A DNA stretch of 37,009 nucleotides from Guillardia theta CCMP2712 (GCF_000315625.1 NW_005434530.1:138627-175635), one strand, 5' to 3'; positions 1-37,009 are shown, numbered from the stretch's first letter. Made by a program: numbers and translations. Notes: generated from the letters alone by a model not told the origin.

Positions 1-394
1 CTCCATGGCAGGTGAATGATGAAACCCCACTCTCCTCTCGCCCCCGCTCCACCTCCCCCTGCCCCTCTTCCTTACAGCTGCCAGCAAATGCATCCCTCCT
101 TCCACCCTGCCTCTCCTCCTCTACATCCTCTTCCTCCTCCTCCTCCTCCTCCTTCCAAGTGCCAAGACTACTAGCTCAACGAGTCCTTCCCATCCTCCAC
201 CACCTCCTCCTCTCTCCTCCTTCTCCTCCTCCTCCACTACCTCCACCTCACAGCTGCTCCAACAGGTTCCAGATCCTGGCACAGGTGGATGGCAGAATAA
301 CCAACGTGAGGACGAGGGAGAGAAGGTTGTCGCACAACTAGCTGTAAACAAACTTAAAGATGGACGTCGTTTATCTGGTTTCGTTGGCATGTAG
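1..394 (+). CDS. 3' end of a low-complexity hypothetical gene (partial)
   Basis: Possible intron 12-77 (AG|GTGAAT...TTACAG). One frame then stays open to TAG at 392-394 and ends VPDPGTGGWQNNQREDEGEKVVAQLAVNKLKDGRRLSGFVGM*. The frame is ambiguous because of CCT repeats. Confidence 0.3.
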
Positions 395-489
395 AACTGA
401 AGAGAAGGAGGAGGAAGAGGGAAAGAGAGGAGAGTTACAGAGACAGGGAGGAGGAGGAGGAGGAGGAGGAGGAGGAGAAAGGAAGTTGT

Positions 490-3400
490 TCATGCTACAG
501 CGATAGCGAGCGCATGGTCATCTCCAGCAGCAACAAACTTGAAGTTCTGCATGACGAGATAATCAACATTGTATAAAACTCATCACCATCATCATCTACA
601 ACAACAACAACAACATCATCATCATCATCATCATCATCATCATCACCATCACCATCATCTCACCTCATCCTCCACTCCAGGTGATGCTCGCGGGGTCGAA
701 CTCTCCAAGACTGACCGCCATGTCAGCAGAGTGAACGAGCTAAGTGAGTGATTGACCTCCATGACATGTCGTTATGCAAGATCCCCACACAAACAAGGTA
801 GTCTGTCTCATCCTCTTCCTGCCCTTCTCCTCCTTGTCCACCTCATTATCATCGTCGTCGTCGTCATCATCATCATCATCCTTCCTGTCCTCCTCTTGCT
901 CCTGCATGTACATCAACAGGTTAGCTCCATGATCAGTTTCTCGTTCAAGCCCACAGACTCACCTGCTGTCTGCCAGCAGACCGACTTCTTCTACAACACA
1001 GCAAGGCGTTGTGATCGGCTCCGCAAGCTGTTTCACAGTCAAGTTTATCCTGATCAGCACAAGATCTTTTCTCGTGTGTGTTCGTGTTTGTTGAGGTTGA
1101 AATCTTACCAACAGACATGACGCGGAAGTTTTCAAGGCTTGAGATCTTGAGGGGAAGAACAACCTGCATGATATCACCAACACGCGAGAACTAATCGGCA
1201 CAAGACGAGAACATCACAAGGTTGGGACAACAGAACACGACAGGTGACGACAGCAGGAGATTGCTATGCACAAGAACATCAGACAAACATCACATCATTT
1301 CTACATCACATCAAACAATCCTTATCGATCTTCAGCATCTGCAAATTCATCTACTCCACCTCATCACGAATTCCGTGCAAGGATAGATGCCTCCCGTGCC
1401 CCAGTCTTCCTCCTCCTCCCTTCAACTTCGGCATGCAGTCTCGACCGAAGGTATACACCTCCCCATCACAACAGATGGCTGCGCTGTGAACAGATCCTGC
1501 TGATACCTGAAGGAAACAAGTCACATGACAGACGCGATTGAATGCGTCAGGAAGAGATGGAGTTGTCAATGTTGTGAGAAAGCGTTTGTTCGATATATCC
1601 ATGTACAAGAAGATGGATGATTGATGTAAAATGCTTTCACGGCATAGCATTTGAACTTCTCTACATGGCAATCAAGATTTGATATAAGGGGTGAGATCTC
1701 TTGAGTCCACAAGAGACGATCAAACAAGTGAAGAACAACACAGACCATAAGAGGCGATCAAACAAGTGAAGAACAACACAGACGGCAAGGAACATGCCAA
1801 GAAAGAAAGCAGGGAGCAAACATGCAGGCATTCTATCCCTGACCTCCTTAACTGGTCTTGGCAGCTTGACTTGTCGAGGCTCCATCACAATCGAGCTGCT
1901 CTCAAACCCAAGTTGTGCATGTTCGTTCCAACCCCATGCAAAGAGATTCTTATCTGTATCAATGGCGAAGCTTGTCTCTCCCCCTGCTATCACCTTGTTG
2001 ATTCGAAACTTTGAGTCTGACCTCATCATCTTCCGTTCCAATCAGTTCGTTTGAGGTGTGAAGATGATGCAGCGACAACTCACTCGTTGAAAAGTTTCGA
2101 TGACAGTTGGAGTGTGTTGATCCTCAAGTGTTCCATTCCCCTGTCATCATCATCATCATCATCATCATCATCATCAACAACAACAACAACAACAACAACA
2201 ACAACAACAACAACAACATTTGCATCATCATCATCTCCATCATCACCATCATCTCCATCATCATCCTCCATCATCATCTCCATCATCTCCATCATCATCA
2301 TCATCATCATCATCATCATCATCATCATCATCATCATCATCATCATCATCATCATCATCATCATCATCATCATCATCATCATCATCATCATCAGTCATCA
2401 TCATCATCATCATCATCATCATCATCATCATNNNNNNNNNNNNNNNNNNNNNNNNNNNNNNNNNNNNNNNNNNNNNNNNNNNNNNNNNNNNNNNNNNNNN
2501 NNNNNNNNNNNNNNNNNNNNNNNNNNNNNNNTATCTCATCATCATCTCCATCATCATCTCCATCATCATCTCCATCATCATCATCATCATCATCATGCGA
2601 GAACAATATCTGGCTCATACCTGTTGTCCAAAGTTTCCTCTGCCGAATGAAATCACGAGCCCGTCACATGTTAGCAAGAGGGAGTGATTCGATCCGCACC
2701 TGCCCCTCAGTCTCACCTGAGCAAAAGAACAAAGTGCTACGGAATAATCATGACAATGATGATCAGGATGATGATGAAGATAATGATGATAAAGATATTT
2801 CTCATACACAAGAAACCTTACGCGATCGATCTGACGTCTTCAACGCTTACTGAAACCTGTTGTGGAACAAGGTTGATCTTTCTTCTTGTGAACAATCTTG
2901 TTGTCGAGCTCTCGTCATATTGCGGAATATCATTATTCTTCAAATGATCGCTGGTTCCACACTCCCCGTACATGTTTGATCCCCACGCGTACAGCTCAAC
3001 TCTTCCATGCTCTTGGTCGTACACAGATGCTACGGTATGTGACCCTCCGCATGCCACCAGGAAGGCTCTATGAGGAAGAGAAGAGACCTCCCGTGGTTGC
3101 GGCTCGTTTTTCTGCGATCATCATCATCTCCATTGTCATCATCAAGTTCATCAACATCACCACCACCATCACCATCACCGTCATCTCCATCATCTCCATC
3201 ATCATCATCATCATCATCATCTCCATCATCATCATCATCATCATCTCCATCATCATTATCTCCATCATCTCCAACATCATCTCCAACATCATTATCTCCA
3301 TCATCTCCACCTCCACCACTACCATCTCCGTCATCAACATTTGCAATTTGCATACTGCGGCATAAAGTCCTTCCCATCATCGGCATCTCTACCATCATCA

Positions 3401-34992: not shown

Positions 34993-35390
34993 TCCTCCAC
35001 CACCTCCGTCCCTTGCTGCTCCTGCCTCCTGCTCCTACTTCTCCTCCTCCTCCTCCACCTCCTTCCCTTGCTGCTCCTGCCTCCTGCTCCTACGTTTCCT
35101 CCTCCACCTCCTTCCCTTGCTGCTCCTGCCTCCTGCTCCTACTTCTTCTCCTCCTCCACCACCACCTCCTTCCCTTGCTGCTCCTGCCTCCTGCTCCTAC
35201 TTCTCATCCTCCTCCTCCACCTCCTTCCCTTACTGCTCCTGCCTCCTGCTCCTACTTCTCATTCACCACCTCCTTCCCCTGCTGCTCCTGCTTCCTGCTC
35301 CTACTGCTCATCCTCCTCCTCCACCACCTCCGTCCCTTGCTGCTCCTGTCTCCTGCTCCTACGTTCCCTCCTCCTGCTCCACCTCTTGCT
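34993..35390 (+). repeat. Pyrimidine-rich minisatellite, 7 units of 49-58 bp with a 162-bp higher-order period
   Basis: Core CCCTTGCTGCTCCTGCCTCCTGCTCCTAC starts at 35010, 35065, 35114, 35172, 35227, 35276 and 35334. Confidence 0.9.
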
Positions 35391-36017
35391 GATCCTGCTG
35401 ATCCTGATCCTACTTGCTCTTTTCCACGTCTTGCTGATCCTGCCCCCTGCTATCTTGCTTGCTCTTCTGATCCTGCTGATCCTGATCCTGATCTTGCTCC
35501 AGTTTCTGCCTCCTCCTGCACCCCATCGTGCTAATACTCATGCTTCTCTTCCTCCTCTGGTTCTTCCAACTCAACCATTTCCGCCTCCCCACAACCTCTT
35601 TCTCATGTATCACCGGAACATTACTGCATTTACTGTATCCGTCTCCTCTCCCATGTATGGATCTCAGGATCTACTTATGCTGGACCTCACATGCCTAGCA
35701 CTGCTCTCAATCTTCTTGGTGATCATATCCTCGAATGGTCCTTGTCTAGAGCTATTTCGATTCATTCTTCTCCATTGCTCTTGTGTTCATTTCTCTTCAT
35801 CATGATTCTCTGTATAGTGCGACAGGAAACCTTGTTGCGAAACATTTACTGTGGTTTTATTCTCGTTCATACCATCGTTGATAGCTAGATTTGCGTCTTG
35901 AGCGCTGCATTGCTCAACTTTTACTATTCTTTACCTCTGCTGATTGCGCAAGGGCAGAAACGTTTCATATGTTTTGGTCGTGAGGTGTTTTGATCTGACG
36001 GCTCCTTTGTTCCCAGG

Positions 36018-37009
36018 ATGAACCGACATTATCTCTTGCTCGCCGTCACTGTTGCGATATCAGCGGTTGTCTTGGCCAAAGTAGACAACATCATCCATGA
36101 AGTCCGATTTGCGGAAGTTTACAGGCTAGTCTTGCCCCCTCCTTCCTGCTCTGCTTCTTCGGCTGACGAGCGATGCCAGGCATTGGTCTGCATCCGAGAC
36201 CCAGAAGTCGATCTATGTAAATGCTGGAGACATGATCCTCATCCGCATGAACGAGAACCCAGGGACAGGATACAGGTACCACTCTACCTTCCTCTACCTT
36301 CCTCTGCGACCGCCCCGTCCTCCCTCTCTCCTGCCCCTTGTTGTTCAACCCTCCTGCTGTCCTCCGCACGCTCAAAACACTCCAGCCCCCCTGACCCTCC
36401 ATTTCCTACCATTCACCGTCCTTCTCCACCTCCATTTCCTCCGTCATTGTCTTCTTTGCTGCTTGTAGCTGACGGTAGCTCCTCTTTCCGCTCTCTCCTC
36501 CCTTTGCTCCTCCTCGATTTCCTGTCTTCTCCTCCTCCTCTCGTCTAACTCCCCTCATCTCCTCTCCCTTCTCCTCTCTCCCAACTCCCCTCTCCCCTCT
36601 CATCTCTTCCTACCCTCTAGGTGGCAACTCGTCACAGACAGCACGGACGGGTTCAACCAAACCCTCTGCCAGCTGCAGCCTACCTCTGGGTATGCCGACG
36701 GCATCTACGAACCCTCCACCTCCACCGACGGCTCCGACGACAAGGTCGTGGACGGAGTGGCTCGTCCTTACGTTCCTCCTGGGGCTGGCGAGTGGCCTTA
36801 CCCCTACCCCTGGGGGGATCGCCGCTTCGACCTGCGATGCACTCAAGCTGGAACAACCATAGTGAAGCTGAGGTGAGTGAGAGCAGTGAGGGGAGGGAAG
36901 GACGAGGATGAAGATGGGGAGGGAGGACGAGGATGAAGATGGGGAGGAGGATGAAGATGGGGAGGGAGGACGAGGATGAAGATGGGGAGGGAGGACGTGA
37001 GACTGCGAG
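36018..37009 (+). CDS. Secreted chagasin-family (MEROPS I42) cysteine peptidase inhibitor, 3'-truncated by the window end
   Basis: Signal peptide MNRHYLLLAVTVAISAVVLA. Spliced SIYVNAGDMILIRMNENPGTGYR|WQL matches the I42 NPxTGYxW loop, followed by ...WGDRRFDLRCTQAGTTIVKL. The expected RPW loop would be in the next exon, outside the window. Confidence 0.75.
36888..36998 (+). repeat. Intronic ~25-bp tandem repeat (GGGAGGGAGGACGAGGATGAAGATG), about 4 copies
   Basis: Direct inspection. Confidence 0.85.

Follow-up and report, generated by a model that had tools for sequence, protein, structure and literature searches.

An alternating gene layout is already known from other compact algal genomes. 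In the Ectocarpales, alternating pairs make up more than 60%, and an excess of opposite-strand neighbours has been called typical of compact genomes (bioRxiv 10.1101/2024.02.19.579948); the opposite-strand bias in Ectocarpus is credited there to the 2010 Ectocarpus genome paper, which we quote through that preprint. Nannochloropsis gaditana likewise shows an alternation bias, its longest alternating run comprising 15 genes, and bidirectional promoters have been proposed for this alga, one of which was tested (PMC3566019). Outside the algae, bidirectional CpG-island promoters are reported at ~10% of mammalian genes (PMC2077898, PMC3082894) and convergent gene pairs with overlapping 3' ends in yeasts (PMC6993858). 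A literature search that did not cover the 2012 genome paper found nothing published on gene orientation in Guillardia.

The stretch analysed here (the window; 37,009 bp) is the terminal 37 kb of a 175,635-bp scaffold from the nuclear genome of Guillardia theta CCMP2712. It is gene-dense, at ~2.5 kb per gene, and strand switches occur at all 13 junctions between supported genes, where support means Pfam matches, homologues, public gene models or coding signal. The gene calls are as follows.

1..394, plus strand: gene 1 of the initial annotation, an open frame with a TAG at 392-394, unsupported as a gene
495..4577, minus strand: gene 2, an F-box and RCC1-like propeller protein with many exons (Pfam); the exons below 1350 and the stop near 495 are read by eye
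5249..7580, plus strand: gene 3, a protein without assigned family, ~8 exons with introns of 47-269 bp
7725..9010, minus strand: gene 4, a small, conserved membrane protein encoded in six or more short exons, with its TAA stop at 7725-7727
9980..11227, plus strand: gene 5, a single-exon nucleoredoxin-like protein with repeated thioredoxin-like domains (Thioredoxin_8, E = 1e-58)
11904..12392, minus strand: gene 6, a single-exon GNAT acetyltransferase (Acetyltransf_1, E = 1.3e-11)
13300..14004, plus strand: gene 7, a small Cys/Pro/Tyr-rich protein, supported by homologues
14319..15197, minus strand: gene 8, a protein without assigned family, 2-3 exons, coding score 66-80 bits
16090..17409, plus strand: gene 9, a single-exon 439-aa protein, coding score 172 bits
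17562..18575, minus strand: gene 10, a protein without assigned family, 2-4 exons, coding score 84-90 bits; the start at 18575 is read by eye
20884..24287, plus strand: gene 11, a secreted-looking protein, ~10 small exons read by eye, crossed by an assembly gap (21389-22355)
24482..26331, minus strand: gene 12, an FkbM-like methyltransferase with a public model (GUITHDRAFT_119351)
27162..30927, plus strand: gene 13, an aldehyde dehydrogenase (ALDH), 21 exons seen (27162-30521), last exon and stop in an assembly gap (30572-30927)
31312..33254, minus strand: gene 14, a phosphoglycerate kinase (PGK) with an N-terminal leader, 4-5 exons; the leader exon and its ATG at 33254 are read by eye
36018..37009, plus strand: gene 15, a secreted-looking protein truncated by the scaffold end, called by coding score

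The initial annotation had reported strict alternation of about 15 genes and had flagged three calls (1-394, 7699-9010 and 13759-14004) as weak. Alternation holds for genes 2-15, and transcript-derived homologues establish the second and third weak calls as genes 4 and 7; the first is unsupported, and the 14th junction hinges on it. The 1-394 frame matches no Pfam family and does not rank first among the six frames for coding score; the DNA upstream of it falls outside the window. A search of 1.84 billion representatives for homologues yielded nothing beyond a 9/18 match that recurs 12 times within a tandem-repeat protein, and we rejected this as a chance hit.

Gene 4 has matches in GUITHDRAFT_155722 (a partial entry on the same contig), in a transcript-derived protein of Hanusia phi (58% identity) and in an MMETSP ORF that is complete, and tblastn maps its homologues to the minus strand at 8488-7727. 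Its first mini-exon, at 9004-9010, is putative. Gene 7 shares 82% identity with a complete 86-aa MMETSP ORF, and two ENA proteins have its invariant Cys and Trp residues in common. It probably begins with an 8-codon first exon at 13300-13323, to which the N-terminal 8 residues of the MMETSP homologue match exactly, and its main exon probably ends at 14004. The weak ORFs, gene 7 among them, have no paralogues in the genome. The alternation pattern predicted two small genes, both of them real, one of which is absent from public protein sets (gene 7, as an 81-aa ORF).

Support for the remaining genes takes several forms. A 415-aa protein identical to gene 5 is present in NCBI, JGI, MMETSP and EukProt and is assigned to a 175,635-bp contig, and one identical to gene 9 is found in NCBI, UniRef and EukProt and placed on the same contig. 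The exact ORF of gene 6 is absent from public protein sets; its codon usage is atypical, and its own frame leads the six frames by 28 bits, though its score is negative in absolute terms. Gene 3 runs from ATG to stop in one continuous spliced frame with a coding score of 187 bits, and the frame of gene 8 ranks first of six by coding score; neither has a Pfam family (above threshold, for gene 3). Gene 15 scores 37-42 bits (exons 36232-36275 and 36621-36876) and likewise has no Pfam family; a chagasin-like motif glimpsed by eye was not confirmed by Pfam, and we do not claim it. The tRNA and Rfam scans of the window gave no matches. Self-trained codon, Markov and Viterbi gene finders served only as rough guides: they drift into low-complexity DNA or are insensitive, and they overlook very small exons as well as genes whose third codon positions are AT-rich (the GNAT gene, the RCC1 exons, genes 4 and 7).

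Intergenic distance depends on orientation. The tail-to-tail gaps between coding sequences measure 100 (to the unverified gene 1), 144, 676, 333, 152, 194 and at least 384 bp, with a median of 194 bp, and the head-to-head gaps measure 671, 969, 907-1366, 892, 2308, 830 and 2763 bp, with a median of 969 bp (Mann-Whitney p = 0.0006). These values reproduce the gap sizes originally given. The accompanying remark that head-to-head gaps carry special sequence classes is borne out as well: such gaps are 10-80 times enriched in 7-mers that belong to the CCGGGCC or the GGGGTAC/CTACCCC/CCACCCC class, and among the gap types of the window, GC islands and GGGGTAC/CCACCCC-type words occur in head-to-head gaps only. 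ORFs within the spacers, including the one between genes 10 and 11, match no Pfam family. The head-to-head spacers are listed below.

4578..5248, between genes 2 and 3: GC-island words
9011..9979, between genes 4 and 5: dense CCACCCC/GTACCCC-type words and a 22-bp tandem array of 5.5 copies (9839-9960)
12393..13299, between genes 6 and 7: a GC island (up to 79% GC, CpG observed/expected 1.07) and short GC palindromes
15198..16089, between genes 8 and 9: low-complexity, purine-rich DNA
18576..20883, between genes 10 and 11: 1.8 kb of GGGGTAC/GGTGGGG-type words
26332..27161, between genes 12 and 13: a word cluster
33255..36017, between genes 14 and 15: a word cluster, a GC island (33720-34700) and a 55-bp minisatellite (34993-35385)

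The same words also lie upstream of 8/9 anchored gene starts on another scaffold of this genome, C5, and this includes head-to-tail junctions. The spacer words therefore mark 5' flanks in general and are not evidence of bidirectionality. Head-to-head genes may share bidirectional promoters, and the well-defined divergent spacers of the window are candidates for such promoters in an alga that is difficult to work with genetically. On the convergent side, stop codons lie 100-676 bp apart, and the 3' UTRs may overlap.

Opposite-strand neighbours, in excess in brown algae, may be so in Guillardia too (13/13, in a selected window), and intergenic length is orientation-dependent in both. In contrast to brown algae, where divergent intervals are short, the convergent intervals of the Guillardia window are the short ones and the divergent intervals are long. 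The size of the run is comparable to that of the longest run in Nannochloropsis gaditana; however, this eustigmatophyte has 1.6 introns per gene, whereas the Guillardia ALDH gene has more than 20. Of the spacers, 3/7 resemble the mammalian CpG-island promoters in having GC-/CpG-rich islands between head-to-head genes, but the spacers are often longer than 1 kb, 4/7 are without a GC island and the words also occur head-to-tail on C5. Stop-to-stop distances of 100-200 bp at four junctions recall the convergent pairs of yeasts and would force 3' UTRs to overlap or abut.

The initial annotation had extended this layout to the genome as a whole, as an organisation in divergent gene pairs, and had set the run against a chance of 0.5^14. 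That null does not apply, since the window was chosen from among ~2,350 of equal size. As a comparison we used C5:1,000,001-1,200,000, an unselected 200 kb, in which same-strand neighbours are frequent. The minus strand carries a tandem of three RWP-RK genes, two of which have the consecutive GenBank accessions EKX53855.1 and EKX53856.1. On the plus strand, an unknown gene Y is followed by a cyclase-like gene and then by a PGK gene that begins at its own ATG, and the gaps in this row of three are 665 and 532 bp. Switches occur at 3/6 secure adjacencies, and parity between accession anchors gives 2/4 and 1 (or 3)/3; the switch rate in this small sample is 0.5-0.67. The estimate combines only six direct adjacencies with parity arguments and depends on a crude gene finder. 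The likelihood peaks at 0.5, with ratios of 0.25 at 0.8 and 0.03 at 0.9 and a support interval of 0.17-0.83, and the window differs from C5 by a Fisher test (p = 0.02). This is one region near a scaffold end, rich in duplicated families, which may under-represent alternation. The divergent pairs around promoter-like spacers and the tight convergent 3' ends stand as a local layout; the generalisation to the genome is unsupported, and a switch frequency far above 0.5 was not found outside the window, in so far as a small sample can tell.

We favour, with a probability of roughly 60%, the reading that the window is a local unbroken run in an otherwise ordinary, unusually gene-dense stretch, expressing at most a preference for opposite-strand neighbours, like that of other compact algal genomes, and not a rule of the genome. 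Fourteen real protein-coding genes would happen to form an unbroken divergent/convergent run, with promoter-bearing DNA concentrated in seven head-to-head spacers (0.67-2.8 kb) and 3' ends crowded together across short tail-to-tail gaps (0.1-0.7 kb). The selective cause may be the one usually offered: paired genes can use a common 5' nucleosome-free region, and transcription of an upstream gene is kept from running on into the promoter of the gene downstream. Elsewhere in the genome, co-oriented neighbours with their own promoter-like flanks would be common. At a switch rate of 0.6-0.75, such a window is expected a handful of times in ~2,350, and it would be more frequent if gene-dense regions alternate more than regions of duplicated families. 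If the bias proves real genome-wide, Guillardia adds a cryptophyte to the compact algal genomes that prefer opposite-strand neighbours.

We consider it unlikely that orientation is unbiased (switch rate 0.5) and that the window is a chance run among the thousands read. The likelihood peak on C5 and the selection of the window after the fact both agree with an absence of bias. However, at that rate a 13/13 run would be expected in 0.3 of ~2,350 windows, and related compact algal genomes do show bias.

Rather unlikely, too, is a mosaic genome, in which old, gene-dense housekeeping regions alternate near-perfectly, unannotated micro-genes such as gene 7 (81-86 aa) occupy seeming tandem junctions, and same-strand neighbours are confined to recently duplicated or lineage-specific families. 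Were this so, no other alternating gene layout known from a eukaryote would be as regular as that of such regions.

Quite improbable is near-strict alternation throughout the genome, with same-strand pairs being mostly artefacts of unannotated small genes and recent tandem duplicates the sole true exceptions. Two junctions of the window were co-oriented according to the gene finder, and each harbours a small conserved opposite-strand gene that it missed (genes 4 and 7); the true switch rate elsewhere could therefore be higher than estimated, and, of the 11 'same' pairs listed crudely for C5, eight are separated by 1.2-2.8 kb, which could accommodate a small gene. In contrast, both gaps in the row that ends with the C5 PGK gene are filled by promoter-type word clusters and leave no such room, and just 150 bp separates the next gene from the word cluster that lies upstream of the first RWP-RK gene. 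The second and third RWP-RK genes carry the consecutive accessions, and a switch rate of 0.9 is ~30 times less likely on C5. Against this unselected sample, the claim of a strict genome rule fails.

It is very improbable that the pattern is a reconstruction artefact, with runs of same-strand exons each called one gene and weak genes invented to suit the pattern: genes defined as strand runs do alternate by construction, the three weak calls were located exactly where the pattern required them, gene 1 is unsupported and homology does not prove the unity of genes 3 and 11, but colinear Pfam profiles or a public model show blocks 2, 12, 13 and 14 to be single genes, and for genes 4 and 7 independent homologues derived from transcripts lie on the strand that was predicted.

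The worry that merged same-strand exons produce alternation automatically is mostly removed. The exons of the RCC1, ALDH and PGK genes follow one another in the order of their Pfam profiles, and GUITHDRAFT_119351 joins block 12; a block corresponds to one gene for blocks 2, 4, 12, 13 and 14. For block 3, unity rests on an unbroken spliced frame; for block 11, it rests on open splice ends. Pfam evidence was gathered exon by exon, and exon joins over the three assembly gaps lie where a reading frame cannot be established. The first gap (2432-2531) lies inside a (CAT)n run separating RCC1 exons of gene 2. The second, in gene 11, has a donor-ended exon on its left and an acceptor-started exon on its right, and gene 11 is probably a single gene across it. 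The third conceals the stop codon of the ALDH gene along with the final ~26 positions of the Aldedh profile.

In gene 2, the exon at 3438-4577 encodes the F-box and RCC1 (Pfam), RCC1/RLD profile positions 196-244 lie in 1664-2041 and a later repeat lies in 1354-1671. The ALDH exons cover Aldedh positions 19-72, 120-141, 175-193, 232-254, 385-409 and 411-435 of 461 in order; the introns are mostly 47-61 bp, and the joined frame, which was checked for openness only, is open over 485 codons. PGK profile positions 80-379, 33-83 and 4-32 fall in three colinear minus-strand exons of gene 14. For gene 12, the public 333-aa model aligns with three minus-strand segments (26331-26017, 25630-25544 and 25219-24485); the gene contains an intron of 330 bp and low complexity, and DUF7870 lies in the C-terminal exon.

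Strand alternation is real for 13 junctions of the window. The initial annotation had claimed strict alternation at 14/14 junctions: this holds for all 13 among the 14 supported genes, but is unsupported for the one that requires gene 1, since the open reading frame at 1-394 (plus strand), already a weak call, found no support as a gene. Calling each same-strand exon run one gene yields alternation by construction, and therefore every block was tested. For multi-exon blocks, the profile evidence consists of exon-by-exon matches rather than joined spliced models.

Supported genes in the window (blocks numbered left to right)
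Block 2, 495-4577, minus: large exon with F-box and RCC1; later RCC1-like-domain profile positions in exons further down the minus strand
Block 3, 5249-7580, plus: coding signal and continuous spliced frame
Block 4, 7725-9010, minus: small membrane protein
Block 5, 9980-11227, plus: single exon; exact protein present in public sets
Block 6, 11904-12392, minus: GNAT acetyltransferase
Block 7, 13300-14004, plus: small conserved Cys/Pro/Tyr-rich protein, 81-86 aa
Block 8, 14319-15197, minus: coding signal and continuous spliced frame
Block 9, 16090-17409, plus: single exon; exact protein present in public sets
Block 10, 17562-18575, minus: coding signal and continuous spliced frame
Block 11, 20884-24287, plus: spans the assembly gap 21389-22355
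Block 12, 24482-26331, minus: GUITHDRAFT_119351, a public model spanning a 330-bp intron
Block 13, 27162-30521, plus: aldehyde dehydrogenase, one gene; 21-exon model open over 485 codons
Block 14, 31312-33254, minus: one PGK gene; profile positions 80-379, 33-83 and 4-32 in three colinear exons
Block 15, 36018-37009, plus: coding signal and continuous spliced frame

Block 11 is probably one gene, because a splice donor ends the exon before the gap and an acceptor opens the exon after it. In the aldehyde dehydrogenase gene, at least 21 exons of 31-207 bp are separated by introns clustered at 47-61 bp, and six of them match Aldedh positions 19-72, 120-141, 175-193, 232-254, 385-409 and 411-435 of 461, in order; the rest of the profile, the last exon and the stop must lie in the assembly gap 30572-30927. 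A division of block 12 into two tandem genes was ruled out, as GUITHDRAFT_119351 joins both halves at the junction predicted from the splice sites.

The alternation pattern correctly predicted two small genes that had been weak calls. For gene 4, called at 7699-9010, the main ORF matches the partial model GUITHDRAFT_155722 of this contig; further matches are a protein from a Hanusia phi transcript (58% identity) and an MMETSP ORF that is complete and has its exons in the same order. By tblastn, its homologues align to 8488-7727 of the minus strand, with the stop at 7725-7727. The protein is without a Pfam family, and its highly conserved core, with a 'VAPPRVPSVGEWAGIRAMKFLKCRYYRYDRSGRDVCEGDSIEDL' stretch, is common to Hanusia, MMETSP transcripts and several metagenome proteins. 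Gene 7, called at 13759-14004, is 82% identical to a complete MMETSP ORF of 86 aa, with conserved Cys and Trp residues; it has transcript support in a relative, and in that form is absent from public Guillardia protein sets. The first eight residues of the MMETSP ORF match 13300-13323 exactly, where the gene probably has an 8-codon mini first exon.

As a strict genome rule, alternation is contradicted by C5:1,000,001-1,200,000, on another scaffold and the sole unselected DNA used (handles L001-L020 refer to this sample). A crude gene finder gave 43 predictions there, with 20 switches in 42 adjacencies, fragments and missed genes included, and secure cases were therefore used instead of the raw count. 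The minus strand carries a tandem of three complete RWP-RK genes, two of which have consecutive accessions (EKX53855.1 and EKX53856.1); accession order follows position for 6/6 anchors obtained. The tandem (L009:1614-6155) has its genes spaced by ~2 kb, and a separate word cluster lies upstream of each of them. Elsewhere, close neighbours run in the order BRCT (plus), unknown X (minus), unknown Y (plus), cyclase-like (plus), PGK (plus) and second cyclase-like (minus), with gaps of 39-665 bp and switches at three of the five junctions. The same-strand run of Y, cyclase-like gene and PGK also breaks the rule: PGK opens at its own ATG, 532 bp past the stop of the first cyclase-like gene. The two cyclase-like genes (L017:9099-L018:3067, plus; L018:5521-9474, minus) are paralogous, single-exon and ~1,320 aa long, carry an LRR region and a weak adenylate/guanylate-cyclase match, and are inverted on either side of the cytosolic-type PGK.

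Parity between accession anchors gives 2 switches in 4 adjacencies and 1 (or 3) in 3. Over the secure C5 evidence, the likelihood peaks at a switch rate (the fraction of adjacent gene pairs on opposite strands) of 0.5, with a support interval of 0.17-0.83; relative to that peak it falls to 0.25 at 0.8 and to 0.03 at 0.9. The sample argues against a rate near 1, and a Fisher test separates the window from the six direct C5 junctions (p = 0.02). At a rate of 0.5, 13/13 switches have a probability of 1.2e-4, and 0.3 such cases are expected among ~2,350 windows (assembly of 87,145,349 bases, 669 contigs); at 0.7, the probability is about 0.01 and about 23 are expected. The evidence is consistent with a switch rate of 0.6-0.75 or with regional heterogeneity. 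As an architecture of the whole genome, with promoters shared bidirectionally and 3' UTRs overlapping, the pattern is putative.

In a survey of 64 eukaryotes, gene orientation is taken to be close to random for most species. Opposite-strand bias is described in Ectocarpus and FDI (Fucophycideae/Dictyotales/Ishigeales) brown algae, exceeding 60% in Ectocarpales (bioRxiv 10.1101/2024.02.19.579948), and in Nannochloropsis gaditana, whose alternating runs reach 15 genes at most (PMC3566019). The gene-orientation literature searched, to which the 2012 genome paper did not belong, held no statement for Guillardia.

Coding gaps are shorter tail-to-tail (100, involving unverified gene 1, then 144, 676, 333, 152, 194 and at least 384 bp; median 194) than head-to-head (671, 969, 907-1366, 892, 2308, 830 and 2763 bp; median 969; Mann-Whitney p = 0.0006). 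The special sequence classes ascribed to head-to-head gaps are borne out within the window, where two 7-mer classes occur in these spacers alone: CCGGGCC-type words in three, as GC islands with short palindromes, and GGGGTAC/CTACCCC/CCACCCC-type words in four to six. Word clusters nearly fill the two longest spacers (18576-20883, 33255-36017). However, upstream of 8/9 anchored C5 gene starts, head-to-tail junctions included, the words derived from the window again form clusters, and so they mark 5' flanks generally, not specifically bidirectional promoters. The GGGGTAC/CTACCCC/CCACCCC type may represent either a family of promoter words or a dispersed element. Its clusters in 5' flanks span 0.5-2.5 kb (9011-9979, 18576-20883, 26332-27161, 33255-36017 and in C5, L001-L020), and, judged by eye only, the words within one spacer mostly share an orientation (C-rich or G-rich along the plus strand). 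Spacer ORFs in the window matched no Pfam family. A 55-bp CT-rich minisatellite (7.3 copies, 34993-35385) lies between genes 14 and 15, and a 22-bp array (5.5 copies, 9839-9960) stops 20 bp short of the gene 5 ATG.

The window is eukaryotic nuclear DNA with short GT-AG introns and many microsatellites; tRNA and Rfam scans of it gave no match. Its right edge is the end of the 175,635-bp scaffold, and its gene density is ~2.5 kb per gene, versus 3.3 kb per gene between the C5 anchors (public annotation, 29 genes in 96 kb). The GNAT gene (11904-12392, minus) and the downstream RCC1 exons (495-3400, minus) score negatively when a codon/Markov model is trained on the remaining genes, which points to two codon-usage classes, or to a foreign origin of the GNAT gene. 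The PGK gene of the window (31312-33254, minus) has an N-terminal leader exon resembling a signal peptide, which suggests plastid targeting; the C5 PGK (L018:3600-5105, plus) starts directly at the domain.
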